A DNA stretch of 63,629 nucleotides, the filler included, from Lenisia limosa (taxonomy: Eukaryota > Protista > Breviatea): assembly GCA_001655205.1 (NCBI GenBank). It is 11 parts of 11 records of this genome, joined end to end, with 100 filler letters (N's around TTAATTAATTAA, not from the genome) between each part and the next. Parts side by side here need not be neighbours in the genome. Positions count along the whole stretch, not along the records: positions 45,938 to 57,232 come from LPNZ01001082.1; 10 more parts are not named here. One strand, given 5' to 3'. Within the stretch, counting starts at the first letter, position 1. Each line of letters begins with the position of its first letter. The notes beneath the pieces are model-generated. The model ran no database searches and was not told where the DNA came from. It saw only the letters and a list, made by a program, of their open reading frames with translations. Made by a program: the position numbers and the translations under genes. Positions 45,938-57,344 of the stretch are shown piece after piece.

Positions 45938-46018
45938 AAAATTGAGAAAGAGAAAGCTGAAAAGAAGAAGAAAATTGAGAAAGAGAAAGCTGAAAAGGAA
46001 AAGAAAATTGAGAAAACA
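45938..46018 (+). repeat. 33-bp A/G-rich tandem repeat
   Basis: AAAATTGAGAAAGAGAAAGCTGAAAAG units, ~2.4 copies, at a contig start. Confidence 0.85.
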
Positions 46019-46264
46019 CACAAAAATCGTTATACAAGTCCACATTCAAGGAATAAATGGCAACTATCTGGGAAAGTTTACCCTTGCAGACAGTGCTATT
46101 TTGAGCATTTTTCTCTCAAAATTCACCATTACATAGCCAAAGCAAAGGGAAACCCGGAACCAATTACTCCGAGGAGTGCAAATTTTTGTTTTTTAACACT
46201 AAAAGAGGGTAAGATTTGGAAAAAAAAATCCTGTGAAAAGGCGAAAGGGGGACGGACCCCCGGG

Positions 46265-49200
46265 CAGGGGGCACTTAATCAGGGGGTGCAGACATTATTT
46301 ATAATTCGTGATAATGAAAGATATTTCAAGATCATGAGAGATCATTGAGAGATCAAGGTCAAATTATATTCCTGGTCCCTGTACTCTCCACGGCCTCCGA
46401 GCGTTTGCGCTCCCCTGGTTAAGGGGAGATTTTGGGGGCTCTTCCAGAGTGTCCCTGGTCCACATAATGCTCTTTTTTTGTTTTCTCACCCTCAGTCCCT
46501 CAGTTTCCTGCTTAATCCTTTCCTCCCCTACTCTACTGTATCCTCCGCCCGCTGATTTTTATAATAGCAGCAGCGATAGAGCAGCAGCCAGCAGCATAGC
46601 AGCATTCGAAGTTGGTTTACATACAAATAGCTGACTACTTATCGATAAACATTGTTGAATATTTGAAACTCTTTTTCCTGTTGTTTTTTTTCTGTTTTTT
46701 TTATAGTTTAACATTTATTTCAGGATTTCCAAGTTCTTGGTTGAACTGTGATTGGAGTAACAATTGACGTAGCCATAAGTAGGGGGCTCTTTAGTAATTT
46801 ATTTTATTCAGATTGTATTTTATTTATTTTATTGTTTTATTGTTTTTCTGGAATAACATTGTTTTAGAAAGAAATTTAAAAGTTATTGCTGCTTACAAAT
46901 CAACAACATAATACTAATACTTTAAATAAGAACATAAATAACAAAGGGGTAAATTAAATTGTCTAGATTCTGGGAATCTAGTTGGGGTCAAGTTTATGAA
47001 GAAGGGTACAGATCATAGCCTCTCCCTTTCAAACAATAAATACATGTACTACATATATTTTTCAATAGTAAGAGAATGTAACTTTGCCCTTTCTTTGAAG
47101 TTTATTTTCACAAGAAATCATACCCCTTGTGTTTGTGTTTTACCATACCTTTTAGAGAAAACATGGGGGAAGAAGCTCCCGTTTGGCATTCCTGGATGGA
47201 ATTTATTTTTCCAAGGAAACTCTTTTTGACAAATCTTCGGGAAGACAACTCAAATTCAAATCTGATTGAGCTAACTCATTAAGGGCTTAGCCCACATAAT
47301 TGAAAGATATGGTCTCTTTAACGAAGAAATGGACAGAGTTGAATTCATCAACACAATGCGCAGCGTGTTCTGCACTAAGGGTACCATCTGTCGCATGGCA
47401 AAGGAGATCACAAAAGCAATAACAGAATACAGAAAAATTGATTTCCATTTTTCTGAAATCTCGGCTGCAAAGGAAGTCATTGACTTTCAAATCCAATACC
47501 TTGAAAATAAGACAGATCGAAAGTCTCTGATCATGACTGAGTCAGAGCTGGCTGAATATCTTCGAGTCAACTCTCCATCTAAAATTCCCATCGCCAAGTC
47601 CTCTCCAAAGAAGTCAGCCAAAACCGCCAAAAGCAACATCACACTTGCAGACAGTATCCGGGCATTTACACCCAAAAATTTTACTAACAACCAAAGGTGG
47701 GTCAACTTTCAAGAAGGATGAGAATGATGATGAGGATGATGAGGATGAGCCAAAAAATGAGGAAGGCAGCAAGATGACGGTGTCGCTTATCTTGCTGCGC
47801 AAATTCCCCCACCCCCTGCTCCTCCTAATAATATGGAGAAAAGTGATGATCGGTAAGCTATTCATACCATAATACACAACGATCAAACTTCATAATCTTT
47901 TGAAATGGAAGAAAGTCTCTTTGATACCATAACTGGTAAGGTACATCTCGCCAAATTTTTTTCAAATATGTTCGTTCAGGCATAACATCTGTATTTACAC
48001 AGAAAATGCATTTGATCCTGCCTTTGTTATTCTTCAGGAAATATCAACATCATCAACATATTTCAAATCAAAAGACAATATTGGTATTATTTTCACTCAC
48101 TTCACATTTGAACTAATCCATTTTGTTTGATACAACAAAAAGTAGGCAAATCAAATCTACCTCCCCTCATGATTTTCACAACTTTTTCTCAAAATGTAAG
48201 GTCTATATTCGTTTACTTATGTTATCCACTATTTAATTCCCTAGCACATTTACTTGATCCTGGAACCATTTTGGCCAACGAACAGATCTCCCATCTTCAG
48301 AGCCAAGTTCGATTTTTGACAAGGACAATTGTTGATATAAAGAAGAGAGAATTCACGATTGAAAACTTCCTGAAGAAGGCCGAATCCGTGCGGGTCGAAA
48401 GCTCTTCGCCTCTAATAGACCTAAAAACAACCTTGGGAAATCGCGAATGCTTTCGGCGGTATGGATTTATGTTGGTTTTTGAATACCATTTATTGATTAT
48501 TTTCAGGTAGCCTATGACCTTGGGATGACATCCTTCTGAGAGGTGGCTCAACCCTTCTCACCCATGTAATCTCTGTTGTTCCATGGCTAATACCATCTGG
48601 TGAGTCCCCATTTTTATTTTTCGTTTTCAAGACTGGAATATTATTTGTTAATTTACAATTGGCTTAATAAATTTACCAATAGATTGGCAGTTAATTGGTA
48701 AAAATAATTATTTGGTAATTGAAAGATAGTTCTTATTAAATTTATTTACAGTTACTTGACCAATAAATTTGTTGATAGAGCTTGTGATATTATGTTTCAG
48801 AATCAACTCTTCGCATAAGAATCAAGGACCGTTTTATTGTGGGTTCAGGCCTTAGCAAGGTGGAGGAAAGAGCTGCTGCTGCAAGAGCCTTTTACACCAA
48901 GTAAGGTTCTTTGTTATGTGATTGATAACCATTATGGGATTACAGGAAGGAATTCACCAATCCCAATGGGACATTGCTTCGATGCGTCTCGGAAAAATTT
49001 AAGTCCCGTGTATGTCACTCTCTTCAACACTCTTCACATTTCTGAATTGATCGTAATTCTATTTCTTTTTGATATAATCTCGTTTAGCGCCTCTTAAAAG
49101 ACCCTTCGCACAGCAACAGGGCATCAACATTCTCATCATATGCATCTTGCATCACCCTGTCACTGGAAGACATCATCACATGTACAGAGAAGGGAACAGA

Positions 49201-50103
49201 GACTGCCTGGACTCGCATCGGGAAGTTTGTTCCAGAAACTAAGCCTTCGGACATCACCTCTCTTGCGTTTAAGAACACATTTGGAAAGAAAGCTGAGACT
49301 GCAGAAGAAGACAACGAAGATGAACCTGATGATGAGGCAGAAGAAGTGTTTGCGGAAATTGATGATTTGACAGAGACAACAGAGACGACAGATCAAAGTG
49401 AGTCGTTTGACAATGATACTCTCAAAATGCCTGATAGATCATCCATCCCTATCCGCCATTATCTTAAGTCTCTCTGGGTGCCCATTAAGAAGAGTAACTT
49501 GGGTCATTCAAAGTCGCTAAGCGCCCATCCACTGAGCAAGCCGTCCAGCTCCCCGACTCCTACCCCCACATTACCAACTCCAACCTCACCTTCAACCACT
49601 TCAGTGAACTTCCTGAACCCTGGACATCTCCCCGCTCCTCCCACAATCCCACAATACCCTACTACAAGAAAACGCCTCCGTGTTTAGGTTCAAGTTCAAG
49701 TATTTGGTTTTGTGCAACTAACAGTTGTCAATGTCAAGGATAGTATGGTATGTTTGTTTTTGTTTCTTGTTTGCTTGTTGGTTGGCTAATACGTACTGTA
49801 TATGTATAATGAGCCATCAACTATCCATCATGAGTGCTCTTGGTTTCTATCACTGCACACGCTTTTGTTATACTATTGTTGTTTTAAAATAAATGAATGT
49901 GGCTATATTCTGTTGAAGATTGTAGAATTGTAGATTGACATAGAGAACTTTAATGAAATATTTCGCTTTTGCTTGGTAAAACAACAGGATAACAAAAACA
50001 AAAAAAAAAATGATGGAGAAATCAGATGAAAGATTATGAGAGATCATGAAAGATAATGAAAGATCACGGATTATGTCTACTCCACCTGATTAAGCACCCC
50101 TTG
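46265..50103. mobile_element. 3,839-bp DNA transposon with ~33-bp TIRs and 8-bp TSD (hAT/P-like termini)
   Basis: Left end CAGGGGGCACTTAATCAGGGGGTGCAGACATTA versus reverse complement of right end CAAGGGGTGCTTAATCAGGTGGAGTAGACATAA (26/33). TSD CCCCCGGG (46257-46264) / CCCCCGTG (50104-50111). An empty paralogous site has a single CCCCCGGG at 59601-59608. Confidence 0.88.
47284..49687 (+). pseudogene. Unrecognised spliced gene inside the TIR element, apparently damaged
   Basis: Exon-like segments GLAHIIERYGLFNEEMDRVEF...NNQR, HLLDPGTILANEQ...ECFRR, AFYTKEFTNPNGTLLRCVSEKFKSR, and a ~200-codon acidic/Pro-Ser-rich last exon ending TAG at 49687. Frame break near 47700 and in-frame stop near 48517. 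No transposase motif recognised. Confidence 0.5.
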
Positions 50104-50595
50104 CCCCCGTGAGACCAAATTCAAGGATTTTTGACATTTGCTCAAATTTTTTTAAACAAGTTGGGGAACATTAGGAGGAACATTTCTCTACGTATCTGTC
50201 GAAGCAGATTTTCAAAAAACATTAACAATGGCCTGTACAAAGTGTCAACTTCAAGCTGTCCTCCGGTGAAGTTTGAATGATGTCCGGCGCTTTGAGGACA
50301 CACTATATATATTATATATATATTTATTGGATGACCACTCTTATTCCGTGCCTGAAAGTCAAGCATTCATATGTGCACTGCAATATCACATCAAGCATAG
50401 TCTACAAAAAAGAGGTGTTAAATAAAATGCCACCTCTCATTGTTTTCACTGTTTGATGGATCCATTTGAAAGGATTCCATAATCTATCGGGGGAGCAATG
50501 GGTCCACCCCCCCATCTTATATTCACATCATCCCCTCCTCCATACTATATTCTCCCATCATACCCCCCTCCCATAATGCATTTCCATCTTATGTA

Positions 50596-50735
50596 TGCTG
50601 GAGTGATGGAATGCGGTGCTGCAGAAGCGACTGGTCTGCGCTTTGTTTGTTTTGTTATTGTCAACCCTTGTCTGTAGCCAACAGCGTTAATTTTGGGCTT
50701 TATTTCATATATTTTCCAGTTTTACTCCCCCTCCG
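50596..50735 (+). repeat. Family B full-length copy with no adjacent acceptor
   Basis: GCTGGAGTGATGGAATGCGGTGCTGCAGAAGCGACTGGTCTG...TTTTACTCCCCCTCC. Confidence 0.9.
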
Positions 50736-51260
50736 CAAATACATTTCCACCTACCCCTATACATTCACATTTTGTCTGCCACCCCCCCTCATACCCCCCA
50801 TCACCACCTTCCGACATCATAATTTCACAATTTAGTAATCCAACCAATACCACCTGCGCAGATGGCAAGTAAAAATAGAATTTTGTACATCTATGATGGG
50901 GGGAATGGATAATTATGAGAATGTATGATAGAGTGGAGTAGAGGGGGTGTTAATGGGAATAAATGGTAGAGGGTGTAAAACGAAGCTATAGGAATATGAG
51001 GGAGGATATTATGGTGTATGGTGAAGGAGTATGATGGAGGAATGTATGTCGGGGTGAGGGTATAGCATGGGTAAGTATAATTGTTGATACAATATGAATC
51101 TTGAGGGAGGGGATAGGAATCCGTGAATTGAATACGTGGGGAGAGGGGGTAGTCAGAAAGTATGATGTGATGTATCGGAGAGGGGGGGTAAGTTGGGGCG
51201 TATGTTGTACCATCTCCAGTAGTTATGATAAATACGCCAATTAATCCTTATTTTGCCTCA

Positions 51261-52120
51261 GATTGACATATCTTTACATTGAAGGTCTGACAACACTCAC
51301 ACCAAAAAGAGCCCGCCTGTAACTGACCATTGTTGATGACTATGATACCACTATATCCTGTCTTTGTAGTAATGTTGTTTTTTGCAAATCAAAAAATTCA
51401 TATTTCTTTTATCGTTCTAATTGCTGCAGATTAATATTGGGGAAATTGGGTATTTTTATTAATTTCAAAAAAGCAGTCGCAGTCATGTTACAGGTTGCGG
51501 TCGTATACACCCAATTATGCATATAAATTATATAATATTCTATGATATGTACATAGCATATTACGCTATACAGTGAACACAAGACGTAACATTTTGTAAT
51601 TTACAACCATATATTCAGACAATGGCTATGGTCCTGAGCACAACTAAGACACGTCACTTCGACCTTGTTGCGCTCCGTATTGGCGACTTCAAAGATAAGG
51701 CGGACGGCTGAGTCTCCACTTCAGACCGGTGTCGAAAAAATCCGTTGGCCACTGCAAGAACCATGCTCTTGATAGTATGTTAAGGTTGTAATTGGTGCAG
51801 TGATTTTGTTAAAACACTTATTTATCTAGATGAAACAATTGTCTTCAATGAGTTGACAAGCTCATACGTCATTTCGTATCTTAAGTCGAGGCTAAAAGCT
51901 CTTGCACTCACCAACCCCGAAGGCATCGCAGGCTATCTTTTCTCGCGACTTCAAGACGGCAAAGTGCTCAACGGTGAAGAGCCAATGTCTTATGATGACG
52001 ACAAGACGTTTTTGAAATCACTATTGGCCTCCCATTTCACCAGATGCACAGCTTTCGCCACTTCTTCGCCAGGGAATTCACCCGCAACCACTCCCTTTTG
52101 GAGACTTCAATGTATCGGGA
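51261..52120 (+). pseudogene. Degenerate spliced coding fragment
   Basis: Open AG/GT-bounded exon ~51831-52110 (DETIVFNELTSSYVISYLKSRLKALALTNPEGIAGYLFSRLQDGK...). The upstream exon-like segment at ~51620-51775 has stops in all frames. Confidence 0.3.
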
Positions 52121-52559
52121 TGTTTGTTTTTAAGGGCTTTCAGTGACATTGAATGGTTATGGAACCTCTGAATATATCAATGTAACTCCTTGACAGCCAT
52201 TTTGATAGTAGCACTTGTTTTAATAGGCAAATCAGATAAAAATCCACTTGTCTGACGAATGCACTTTTTGATATTTAGCTCAATTTACGTGAAACTTAAA
52301 CCCCAAGAGTGCCCTAATAATGTGATAAGAGAGTAAAATTGAATAATTGATGAGCCAACCCCCCCCCCCCCAATCAACTCATTATGACATGAAAAAAGGG
52401 GACATCTAGATTTCTAATGTTTATTTTCTGTTGTTCAAGCAATATACTAATGTAGTCCCCGTTTTTTTTAACCAAAAAATGCATTCAACAAAATGAGTGG
52501 GTTGATGGCAATATTCGAGATTTTTTTTGAGAAAATGAATTATCACCACCAATGGTTTC

Positions 52560-54210
52560 AAGAGTATTCTGGCGAAAGAGTCTTGTTAAAGTAATGAACA
52601 AAACTTCACAATAGCGCCAGAAACTTCTTGAGGTGAGGGTAAGTCAGGAATTGACTGTGATTGATGATTAATCTACATTACGAATGAAACAAAAGAACAG
52701 ATTCATAGACAATCTGAGAAAGTGGAGTGTGAAGTCCAATGAATCTAATGATAAAAATAAGCACACTTAGAATTCAAATAAGCTCTTATTGCATGGATTA
52801 CATCTAAGTCTGCTTTTTCTAAAAACAAAAGAACGTTCTTTTCCTGACCGCAATGACTGACAGCAATACGAATAGCTTCTTTTCCATTTAGATAAGAGGT
52901 ACATTTTGTTGATATTGTTGAAAGTCTCTAAAAAAAAAGAGTAAAAAAAGAGAGAGGTAAAAAAAGAAAAAAAAAAAAAAAAANNNNNNNNNNNNNNNNN
53001 NNNNNNNNNNNNNNNNNNNNNNNNNNNNNNNNNNNNNNNNNNNNNNNNTAATCGTTTCGGATTTTCCAAATAAATTGTGGGAAATAGGTTTTATTTTAAA
53101 CAAAAAAACTGTTCAATTGAAATATACATTTTTTCTAGAGTATGAATAGTGAGCACAAAGACTCTCTGTTTTAAGAGATTGACAGAAGTTGAAGGATTGT
53201 ATTATATTTCTGGGCAAATTCCTGTTTTTTTTTTTGATGTTATGCAACTGTTCTCTCTTCTAATGACTGAATTTTTCAATAAAAATAAATTTGGACAGCC
53301 AAGGAAAGAAATCAGGAAATTCAAAATAGAAAAACGATTTAAGAGAAAATACTTGTACAAAGACTCCCTTTCAAAAAGGGGGATGTATTAGAGGGGGTAA
53401 GGGACAAAGGGGATAGAGGGGGNNNNNNNNNNNNNNNNNNNNNNNNNNNNNNNNNNNNNNNNNNNNNNNNNNNNNNNNNNNNNNNNNNNNNNNNNNNNNN
53501 NNNNNNNNNACGGCATCACCATCTCTCATTTGGTGAATTGCATTTGACCCCTTTTAAATGAAAGATCCATGACAATGACTCCTCCGTGCGGAAGTACGTT
53601 GAGGAGGTCTTTCATGCCTACTAGAAAGGAAATGAGTTCCAACGCAAAAAAAAAAAAGAGCTCCATTTGGTTGAAGAAGCTGGTTAAAAACGGAGAGTCA
53701 TATTAGAAGCCTTTTCGAAAGATTGAGGGTGAGGTGAATCAAAAAAGAATAAAACGGACCACTTAATTATGCGAAACCTTTTTGAAGGTTAAGGTGTACA
53801 TGTAGAAGGAAAATCTTTCCGGAATAGGAAGATTACAAAGGTGCAAGATGGGATTTTGAGCCACTTTTGCCCCAAGCAGAGATGCAAGTGTGTTGAAATA
53901 CAGTTTCTTGTGGTAAGTTGAGCCTCAGGTTGGGTTTATTTAAAGTTAAACGTTGTTTGAAATGAGAATCCTGATTACTTGACTTTGTTTGAGAGTTTCC
54001 TCCTCATCTTTTTTTACCTTTTAGGTTGATCATACCTTGCCCCGTTTGTTCTTGTGCACCTGTCTCGATTGCTGCTCTTCTTTCTGTTTTCCCAGCGCCA
54101 AATGTGTTCACCAACCATGTCCTCATCTGCGGCTATCAAGCCCAAGACCCTCTTCCACACATCTCCAGAGTTGAGCCCCCCTCCCCCCAAAGTGACCTCT
54201 CTACTTAGGA
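52560..54210 (+). pseudogene. Possible second, highly decayed Mutator-like transposase
   Basis: SGNSK* (~53313) followed by KIHDNDSSVRKYVEEVF (~53562-53612), reminiscent of GxSxxME and xDxDS motifs; many stops. Confidence 0.25.
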
Positions 54211-57200
54211 CAAACTGAGCGTCTCAACAACAAGGTTTGTGTTTCAAATATTGATGTTGTATTCTTCTTGTTATTGCACACAAATATTTTAACTTCCTTC
54301 TATGTGATACTGTGGTAAGGTGACACGTATTGAGTGTGAAGAGGACTTCTATGCTGGCTTTTCTAGTCAGATCTCTGAGATCCGGATCAAAGCCCCCATA
54401 GAGCCCTATCATGTATTAATATAGTTGTTTGAGACATAAACACATTGGGTGATCAAGGGGTTCGAGGAGGGAGGGGTGCCAGCAATGGGTTTAGAGGTTT
54501 TCTGTAAAAAGGGGGTTTCATAAATACAAGTGAACTGAACTTGAAAATAGTCTCTTTAATTCTTCATTAAATCCTGATAGAATCTGGGGGAATTCTGGTC
54601 AGCTGACCATAACCATGATTTGGATATGATTGTTCTTTGTTTGTGGGTGTCCTTTTCTCCCCCCTGAATACGTAATAAGGAAGAATTAAGACGTTGACAC
54701 TCGAGGTTGTTTGTTCAATATGTGTTGTTCCATACCTCAAATAAAAGCGATAGGCTTTATTTATATCTCGAGTACACTAAAGTCATTTTAAAATCTGATT
54801 TGACCATTTTAAGGGTTTTAGGGGTCTGGCTTTCGGTTTCTAACGTCATTATAAGTTTTAAAGGGTTGTAAGATAAGAAAAAGCTGTTTTTTCGACTTTT
54901 AAAACCCTGTTTTCCCAATTAAGCAAGTAAAGAATTTCTGGAACTTTTGGTCAAATTCACAAAAATATCACAAAAGTTGTTACTTCCGCTAACTTTTTCC
55001 GGAATCTAAGAAAAACGGATAACACCAAAAACAGCAAGATTTTGGGATCTGTCTTTCAAAAAAGGTACCCCGGCCCCGGGCCCCGGGTATAAATTTTTCT
55101 GGAATTTTAAGAAAATTATCAATTTGGTCATTATTTAGTATTTGTTTCAGTTTTTTGTGACATTCAATGGATTTTCACGTTTTTAGAGGCCAATTTCAAA
55201 AAAGAACACCCAATAATCGGATATAATCGGATTAAATGCTCAGCATATGATATCATAAATTGCATAAATATATTATGTACTAGTATATACATGTATGTAT
55301 TCCATGTAATGTGTATATAGATAGATATTCCTAATAATAGGTACATAGCTAGGGGAAAAACGAGTCTTACCGAAAAAATAAGAAGAAGAAGTAATCTGCT
55401 GGCTGAGTGAGGTGGCAAAACAGAAGTTTCCGAAACAAAAAGACTTGATTTACCTGAAGCTCCAACAGAGCATAAAGAATACGTTCCAAAAACTAAAATA
55501 ATAATAATAATAATAAAAAATATTCTTAATAAGAGATCTAAATCTCAATTTTCAACTGTACAAACTATTCATCCTTTATATTCAACCCTTATATATTGTT
55601 GTAAAATTCCCCTCAAGAAAAACAAAGTTATACTTTTTGAGTCATATTTATGACTATTTTTTTGTTATATTTCTCGAGATGATCGAATTATTAGAAAATT
55701 CAGAGCAGGATAAGAGGGGGTGACATAACATTGGAATTTCAACAATAAAAAATTGGTTCCTAGTTCGTCGCTCGGAACCAACTACCAACCGAGAAAACTC
55801 CCTTTGTCATACTTTAAAGAGAAAGGACAGTTAATGAGACACCATGTGCATGTGGCCTGTATAATTACATATTGGGTAGCAGGGTGCAGTTCCTCTTTGA
55901 ACTGAACTATGCTGTTTATCGCAAAACTTTGTTGTAACTGGAACAGCCTTCGTTTACCTTAGATTATATATCAAACTCTTAAAATCCATAATGGAACCCC
56001 AACAAGAGCTGCGGTCAAGAAGAAGCCTGCCGCCACTTTCATCAAGAAGGTGAAGAACACCACTGGTAACACTGCATTGTCAAGAAGAACGCCAAAGCGA
56101 ATGCACCAGCCAAAAGTCAGAAGAAGAACACCACATCAGCTAAGGAAGAGGTCGAAGAGAACGTTACACACTATTTATCAAAGAAACAATAAATACATAA
56201 TAAAAAAAAGCTCTTTAGGCCACAAGAAGAAAAACACATTGAAAAATCGTTGGTAAACCAGATTGTTACCTCTGAGTTTTGTTCAATGCACTAAAATAGG
56301 AAAATATCAGACCTCTTGTTGCTAGTTCTTTTGCGGCTTTTCTCTAGCATACTAACAATCTACTTTTAAATGTATTAACGAAATCTCCAATTGTCTTGAT
56401 TTTAAGATTTTATTAAGTCGAATTGCAGCTGAGCCACAACTTACATATGTTTAGATTGGGCACATTGAAAAGATGTTCTCAAGCTTAAATGTATAAAGTG
56501 GTTTTTACAGCCGAGATCAAAATCTTCTTCTCCGTTTCTGCTTCAGTTTTAAGACAAGTTATATAAATGAGCAAGGTGTAGACTGATTTATGATAACTTG
56601 ATGAATGTTTTTTGAAAATCGAAATACACAGACTGGCTGGGAATCCGAGCCGAGTTTCTTTGATTAGACGTCTATTGACTCCATTATATAGACTGAACAA
56701 GGACAATTCTTGATAAAACCGTTCCAAACGTCTATTTAAATACCTCAAAACCACTACATTTTCTCAAAAAATGGACTTTCGATTCAAATCCTCCTTAAAA
56801 AACTCCGGGGAACTTAACTGTACACGAAATACTGCTATTCTGAAGTATTCTGAAGGAGGGGGTTTTCAAAAAATATTTTGGCGTAAAGGAAAATGGGTGA
56901 CCCTGGCCCGGTTCGATTCTGACCAAAAGATCATTTTTCGATATTTTTTTTTTTTTTAACCTCTCTTCTTTTTTTGGTCAAAATTACTGTATTTTGATGT
57001 TATTGATAGTTTAGTACCCAAAACTGCCAAATTTCACACTTAAAAGGGTGCTATTGAAGTGATTTATGTCGATTTTTAGCTTGTTCGTGGTTTCAATCAT
57101 GTTTTGCGGTTTTGGACACCAACCTACATATATATATGCTACCGCGCAGAATTCCCGTAAACTATCCGTATTTCCGTAAATTATTATTTTCTCTAATTTT

Positions 57201-57344
57201 TTTGGCTTAAATGTACCAAAATTCAACAAAAANNNNNNNNNNNNNNNNNNNNNNNNNNNNNNNNNNNNNNNNNNNNTTAATTAATTAANNNNNNNNNNNN
57301 NNNNNNNNNNNNNNNNNNNNNNNNNNNNNNNNGCAACAAAAGAG

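Follow-up and report, generated by a model that had tools for sequence, protein, structure and literature searches.

The window analysed here is a stretch of 63,629 nucleotides of DNA from Lenisia limosa (GCA_001655205.1), in which positions 45938-57232 come from LPNZ01001082.1 and form the piece that concerns this study. Within this piece, a transposon of 3839 bp lies on the plus strand at 46265-50103, bounded by terminal inverted repeats (TIRs) and flanked by an 8-bp target-site duplication (TSD). A copy of an older dispersed repeat is split by the element, whose interior contains a plus-strand reading frame that can be spliced through seven predicted exons into 485 codons. The features of the element and of its insertion site are collected in Table 1.

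The two ends of the element stand out from the rest of the piece by several measures. No inverted repeat at 45938-57232 is longer than the TIR pair, which extends over 37 nt with 81% identity when part of the TSD is included. Counted from the tips, the two arms match at 27 of 34 positions, with the terminus CAGGG on the left and CAAGG on the minus strand on the right, and a 22-nt core of the TIR is confined to the two element ends within the piece, against a chance expectation of 0. The TSD copies agree at seven of their eight positions. A structure scan of the whole piece, which asked for inverted arms matching at 27 or more of 34 positions together with adjoining 8-mers matching at 7 or more of 8, returned a single pair, namely the ends of this element, and no pair of this kind arose in 80 first-order Markov simulations. 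Additionally, tandem subterminal repeats of 10-11 nt lie inside both ends, the tandem units spanning 46310-46355 and 50026-50066, in the same orientation on the left and on the right. An earlier note on this DNA had proposed a TIR transposon with an 8-bp TSD; the ends, the TSD, the uniqueness of the pair in the scan and the empty simulations all bear this out.

Related loci without the element were recognised through the left flank. Its open frame matched, by tblastn, two predicted proteins from other public contigs (ENA), P0003 (87% identity over 63 amino acids) and P0004 (72% over 54 amino acids). Because the left-flank sequence runs straight into the right-flank sequence in both, P0003 and P0004 represent independent empty sites. 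Residues 54-64 of P0004 correspond to 46221-46253 and the following residues 65-78 to 50105-50146, so that P0004 implies a single-copy target state; of the 3851 extra bases at this junction, 3839 belong to the element, 8 to the TSD and 4 to an indel. In P0003, position 46228 is joined to 50106. The 3.84-kb segment is an insertion with exact boundaries, which, as judged from these comparisons, are those set by the inverted repeats. The alignments of P0003 and P0004 to the flanks shift frame several times, suggesting that both proteins are probably spurious open reading frame (ORF) calls on a non-coding dispersed repeat. The copies of this repeat represented by P0003 and P0004 are 72-87% identical to the one that hosts the insertion (at the protein level). 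No Pfam domain was found in the repeat around the insertion, and with P0004 as the query nothing was returned by an IMG/VR scan or by a scan of GTDB genomes.

The coding capacity of the element was assessed by translating stop-free segments of at least 35 amino acids from both of its strands. The 44 segments scanned against Pfam, which comprised every one of at least 40 amino acids and for which E values up to 1 were considered, contained no BED, THAP, RNase H-like DDE, hAT dimerisation or P-transposase family, and no other family reached its threshold among them, with sub-threshold noise only. No transposase domain is present in any of these segments; therefore, the element carries no recognisable transposase and is non-autonomous as it stands. 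This blank result agrees with the earlier note, which had recognised no hAT, P or other DDE transposase in the interior.

The sizeable open frames within the element all lie on the plus strand, the two largest covering 199 codons (49088-49684) and 148 codons (47275-47718). The best model, with GT-AG introns of 446, 49, 82, 201, 45 and 78 nt, extends over 47329-49687, and its seven exons total 1458 nt without an internal stop. A multi-exon reading frame is thus present on this strand, and the model comes close to the span of 47284-49687 given for the gene in the earlier note. Strong splice sites and compatible phases characterise exons 5, 6 and 7. For exon 4, the weaker acceptor at 48540/48541 was used because splicing to the consensus-like acceptor at 48506/48507 leads into stops whichever frame is read, a choice made post hoc to hold the frame open. 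Codon-position heterogeneity was marked over the whole model (chi-square 39.7, p 5e-7), and exons 1 and 7 taken alone each exceeded (Table 1) all 60 control windows of 600 nt from outside the exons, where chi-square was 18.9 or lower; over exons 3-6 the bias was not significant (chi-square 8.3). Overall, the frame probably represents either a real gene or its recent relic.

A further open stretch was noted beside exon 1, at 47700-47852. It encodes an acidic run of Asp and Glu in a frame different from that of exon 1, and it ends in a good donor (47852/gtaagc) in phase with exon 3. This stretch could be an alternative exon or the sign of a frameshift in this copy, and the alternative route through it, in frame with exon 3, requires an assumed frameshift in exon 1.

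Table 1. Features of the transposon, its predicted gene model and its insertion site, with positions counted along the window.
Feature	Position	Strand	Remarks
Older repeat, left half	46040-46264	+	tblastn with P0003 and P0004; position approximate
Left TSD copy, CCCCCGGG	46257-46264		7/8 identical to 50104-50111
Whole transposon	46265-50103	+	TIRs and TSD; the loci of P0003 and P0004 lack it
Left TIR, tip CAGGG	46265-46298	+	
Left subterminal repeats, units ATGAAAGAT / GAGAGATCA	46310-46358	+	
Predicted exon 1	47329-47696	+	ATG start; 122 codons and 2 bases; donor AAG/gtgggt; open frame 47275-47718; chi-square 20.3
Predicted exon 2, 53 nt	48143-48195	+	Poor acceptor; least certain exon
Predicted exon 3, 214 nt	48245-48458	+	Helical or coiled-coil-like
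Predicted exon 4, 59 nt	48541-48599	+	Acceptor ttctgag/
Predicted exon 5, 100 nt	48801-48900	+	tttcag/ and /gtaagg, phase-compatible
Predicted exon 6, 64 nt	48946-49009	+	ttacag/ and /gtatgt, phase-compatible
Predicted exon 7	49088-49687	+	199 codons and TAG; acidic tract and Pro/Ser/Thr-rich tail; longest open frame; chi-square 25.4
AATAAA, possible polyadenylation signal	49888-49893	+	200 nt past the stop; inferred from sequence
Right subterminal repeats, ATGAAAGATA x 3.9	50026-50066	+	Orientation as at the left end
Right TIR, tip CAAGG on the minus strand	50070-50103	-	
Right TSD copy, CCCCCGTG	50104-50111		7/8 identical to 46257-46264
Older repeat, right half	50104-50312	+	P0003 residues 150-187 and P0004 residues 65-138, with frame changes; position approximate

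Ser, Thr, Lys, Leu and Glu are abundant in the predicted product. AlphaFold2 models of exons 1 and 7 consist of helices and long coil without strands, at low confidence. Searches for relatives of these parts of the product gave no usable match in the ESM Atlas (exons 1 and 7), nothing below E 0.07 in a PDB sequence search (exons 1, 3 and 7) and nothing in IMG/VR scans (exons 1 and 7). The junction of exons 4 and 5 shows what we take to be a likeness to the helix-turn-helix motif IP.STL.R, as a candidate only, both segments being without a Pfam match. From a single copy, the function of the passenger protein is not assignable.

Ends of this kind had been said to fit the hAT or P superfamilies, and the 8-bp TSD together with the CAGGG and CAAGG termini is in accordance with both. 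The tips of hAT elements follow the consensus 5'-YARNG, which the two termini match, and P elements prefer G+C-rich targets. Features that favour hAT are the YARNG tips, the imperfect TIRs and the asymmetric subterminal repeats, and those that favour P are the TIR length of roughly 31 bp, the unevenly spaced short motifs that lie inside the ends, and the G+C-rich target. Imperfect TIRs, 8-bp TSDs and asymmetric subterminal repeats are described for hAT elements, and in Hermes the BED domain binds the subterminal repeats (PMC10368747). In P elements, TIRs of 31 bp and 8-bp TSDs are accompanied by internal binding sites, and the P superfamily is marked by TSDs of 7-8 bp and by TIRs of 13-31 bp that begin with CA (PMC7776569), a description with which the ends found here agree. 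The protein side gives neither superfamily its transposase. A transposase with a BED finger, an RNase H-like core and a C-terminal hAT dimerisation domain was absent from the 44 segments, and hAT membership could therefore be at most that of a non-autonomous element. For the THAP-domain transposase with a GTP-binding insertion that typifies P, no THAP or Tnp_P_element match was obtained in any frame, and a P-like 11-bp subterminal inverted pair was not found between the two 600-bp end regions, where the clustered motifs are direct. Judged from these characters, a hAT origin has about an even chance, a P origin is possible at a lower level, and any other superfamily would be improbable.

Several results weigh against interpreting the element as a hAT- or P-type transposon that carries a passenger gene. 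With exon 1 as the query, a HMMER search of 1.84 billion representative proteins found no real relative or parental gene, its two matches (E about 2e-4) being of low complexity. A word-index protein search with exons 1 and 7, which covers only proteins 0.55-1.75 times the query length (110-348 amino acids for exon 7), gave no match either. Language-model recognition scores (1396 and 1917) fell under the level reached by 91% of known families, and the AlphaFold2 models, built for exon 1 and exon 7 separately and with no alignment, had predicted local distance difference test (pLDDT) values of 45 and 48. The stops that follow from the consensus-like acceptor of exon 4 suggest that this gene copy may be non-functional or defective. 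The target CCCCCGKG departs from the nTnnnnAn preference of Ac/Hermes-type elements (PMC10368747), although this is one site and weak evidence. A scan of metagenome contigs with the TIR core gave three matches, all of which proved unrelated when inspected and are put down to chance. The lack of relatives in any search, the low language-model scores, the low-confidence folds, the stops behind the best acceptor of exon 4, the poor acceptor of exon 2 and the lack of a significant codon-position bias in exons 3-6 would all suit an ordinary non-autonomous element with a non-coding interior, in which the open frames, like the splice path that keeps them in frame, arose by chance or are a decayed relic. 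Such an interior is nevertheless considered unlikely, as it would have to account for a 199-codon open frame that is improbable by chance at roughly 40% GC, for a codon-position bias in exon 1 and in exon 7 above that of every control window, for the splice sites and phases of exons 5, 6 and 7, and for frames that share one strand with AATAAA downstream.

Three other explanations treat the frame or the ends differently. The elements of the hAT and P superfamilies normally carry one transposase gene, and the product shows no likeness in Pfam to the DNA-binding modules known in these families; both points count against the proposal that the frame is the family's own non-catalytic second gene, with the present copy derived by deletion from a larger autonomous element and now lacking the transposase gene. 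This proposal gains from the failure to find a host parent gene for exon 1 and from the fact that internally deleted, non-autonomous copies are the rule for P and hAT (PMC7776569), and it is regarded as somewhat more doubtful than a non-coding interior. That the element might be autonomous and its 485-codon product a new kind of transposase, an option that the earlier note had left standing, has in its favour only that this unrecognised frame is the sole sizeable ORF. The composition of the product, dominated by Ser, Thr and Lys, its size and its predicted helices make a catalytic transposase very unlikely among its roles: exons 1 and 7 are large, contribute two thirds of its length and are predicted to form helix and coil without strands, only about 165 residues remain for a catalytic core, and no DDE, THAP, BED or hAT-dimerisation signal was seen. 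The lack of relatives for exon 1 also fits poorly with transposases, which are usually multi-copy and widespread, and an autonomous element of this sort is held to be highly improbable. Finally, the inverted ends and the flanking direct repeat could be coincidental and the difference between paralogues an unrelated indel, as might be argued from the single copy seen, from TIRs of 79-81% identity and from an imperfect TSD. This is scarcely credible in view of the absence of such a pair from all 80 simulations, of the boundaries implied by P0003 and P0004, which equal the TIR tips plus one TSD within a 4-nt indel, and of the subterminal repeat clusters that match at both ends.

Combined, these results make it moderately probable that the element is a non-autonomous cut-and-paste transposon of the hAT or P type with a passenger gene of unexplained origin. 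What is shown is that the element inserted into one copy of the older repeat, with duplication of the 8-bp target CCCCCGKG. According to this explanation, a transposase encoded elsewhere in the genome would act in trans, binding the inverted ends of about 31-34 bp and the clustered 10-11-bp subterminal repeats, and would bring about excision and integration across 8 bp. The interior of about 3.65 kb would be passenger DNA, holding the seven-exon, 485-codon frame (or a recent relic of it) for a predicted protein that is Ser/Thr/Lys-rich, largely helical and disordered, and that would play no part in catalysing transposition. The passenger would have been taken from host DNA, most plausibly when two nearby ends were mobilised jointly, as proposed for Pack-type elements. 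As to what the passenger is, a captured host gene is favoured, if tentatively; a non-functional passenger comes next and is itself unlikely, and the family's accessory gene ranks below it.

Were age the cause of the seven mismatches between the two TIRs, a neutral frame of 1.46 kb should by now have gathered several stops along with several indels. The choice is then between TIRs that differed from the outset, as they do in Hermes, and a frame kept under constraint. It is unlikely, though worth stating, that the frame is a genuine, expressed, lineage-specific gene with its own regulatory DNA, carried as the intact cargo of a hAT- or P-type element. It would then be either a whole orphan gene that a cut-and-paste transposon moves and copies in a eukaryote other than a plant, or the gene for a non-catalytic accessory protein, so far undescribed, of such a transposon family. 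Were the gene real, a cut-and-paste transposon carrying a complete intron-containing gene would exemplify one way in which genes are duplicated and orphan genes spread. Were it not a gene, the element would be one more repeat-nested non-autonomous copy, useful only for the repeat annotation of that genome. No long-standing question is opened by this element.

Additional sequences resembling parts of the ends were noted. The exact inverted 9-mers shared by the two 600-bp end regions are of low complexity, besides the TIR core and one further 9-mer, TGCTTAATC, which lies at 46509-46517, about 245 nt internal to the left end, and is inverted relative to 50088-50096. The right partner of this 9-mer overlaps the core of the right TIR together with the adjacent bases towards its tip, and 46509-46517 may be a partial extra copy of the TIR. 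Next to an assembly gap, 29 nt at 53557-53585 resemble the right subterminal region at 50055-50083 (76%) and hold the only other ATGAAAGAT in the piece; they could be the relic end of a related element or a chance likeness. A literature search on the TIR core returned primers only.

The piece as a whole reads as a eukaryotic scaffold with a G+C content of about 38% and runs of N at 52985-53048 and 53424-53509. Scans of the piece gave no tRNA or Rfam features, and no Pfam family rose above threshold in the ten largest open frames of the flanks. At the edge of the piece, which cuts it, a 33-nt tandem repeat of 2.4 copies and 95% identity occupies 45938-46015; it encodes a Lys/Glu-rich KIEKEKAEK stretch, a part that P0003 lacks. 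To the right of the element, there is a sharp strand switch at 50480-51250, a C-rich block (50480-50870) giving way to a G-rich one (50880-51250). A long palindrome was ruled out there, with no inverted repeat found; the arms barely align, and the feature is therefore a compositional switch.

Among known systems, Pack-type elements of plants, including the Pack-hAT elements for which gene capture is described, resemble the present case in having TIRs, an 8-nt TSD, no transposase and an intron-bearing, gene-like interior, and also in their proposed origin, in which the DNA between neighbouring ends is mobilised (PMC8903248). All of these traits of structure are found in the element. Identifiable host-gene fragments, which are shuffled, define the Pack-type elements, whereas no parental gene or homologue was found here and the cargo resembles one complete transcription unit; they are also known from plants, whereas the host in this case is, as inferred from gene structure, not a plant. 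A second parallel is offered by the hAT elements of Dothideomycete fungi that captured a whole histone H3 gene (PMC6710886), in which a hAT-type element likewise contains a complete passenger gene other than a transposase. Those elements have a recognisable housekeeping passenger, retain their transposase and occur in tens or hundreds of copies, whereas the element described here has no transposase and carries an orphan ORF.

With internally deleted P elements, the element shares short motifs inside the ends, a spacing of these motifs that is unequal between the ends, and a G+C-rich target. The likeness extends to the 8-bp TSD, to a TIR of about 31 bp starting from CA and to a multi-exon gene (PMC7776569). 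It differs from them in having no THAP or P transposase domain in any frame; an 11-bp subterminal inverted pair was not found between its 600-bp end regions, and its TIRs are 79-81% identical whereas those of P elements are perfect. Compared with Hermes, hobo and the Ac-type hATs, the target lies off the nTnnnnAn pattern, the BED, RNase H and hAT dimerisation domains are missing, and the TIR exceeds the 10-25 bp usual in hAT elements. The tips of the element fit the YARNG consensus of these hATs. Its 8-bp TSD, its imperfect short TIRs and its asymmetric subterminal repeats correspond to theirs as well, and in Hermes, hobo and the Ac-type elements such subterminal repeats are binding sites (PMC10368747).

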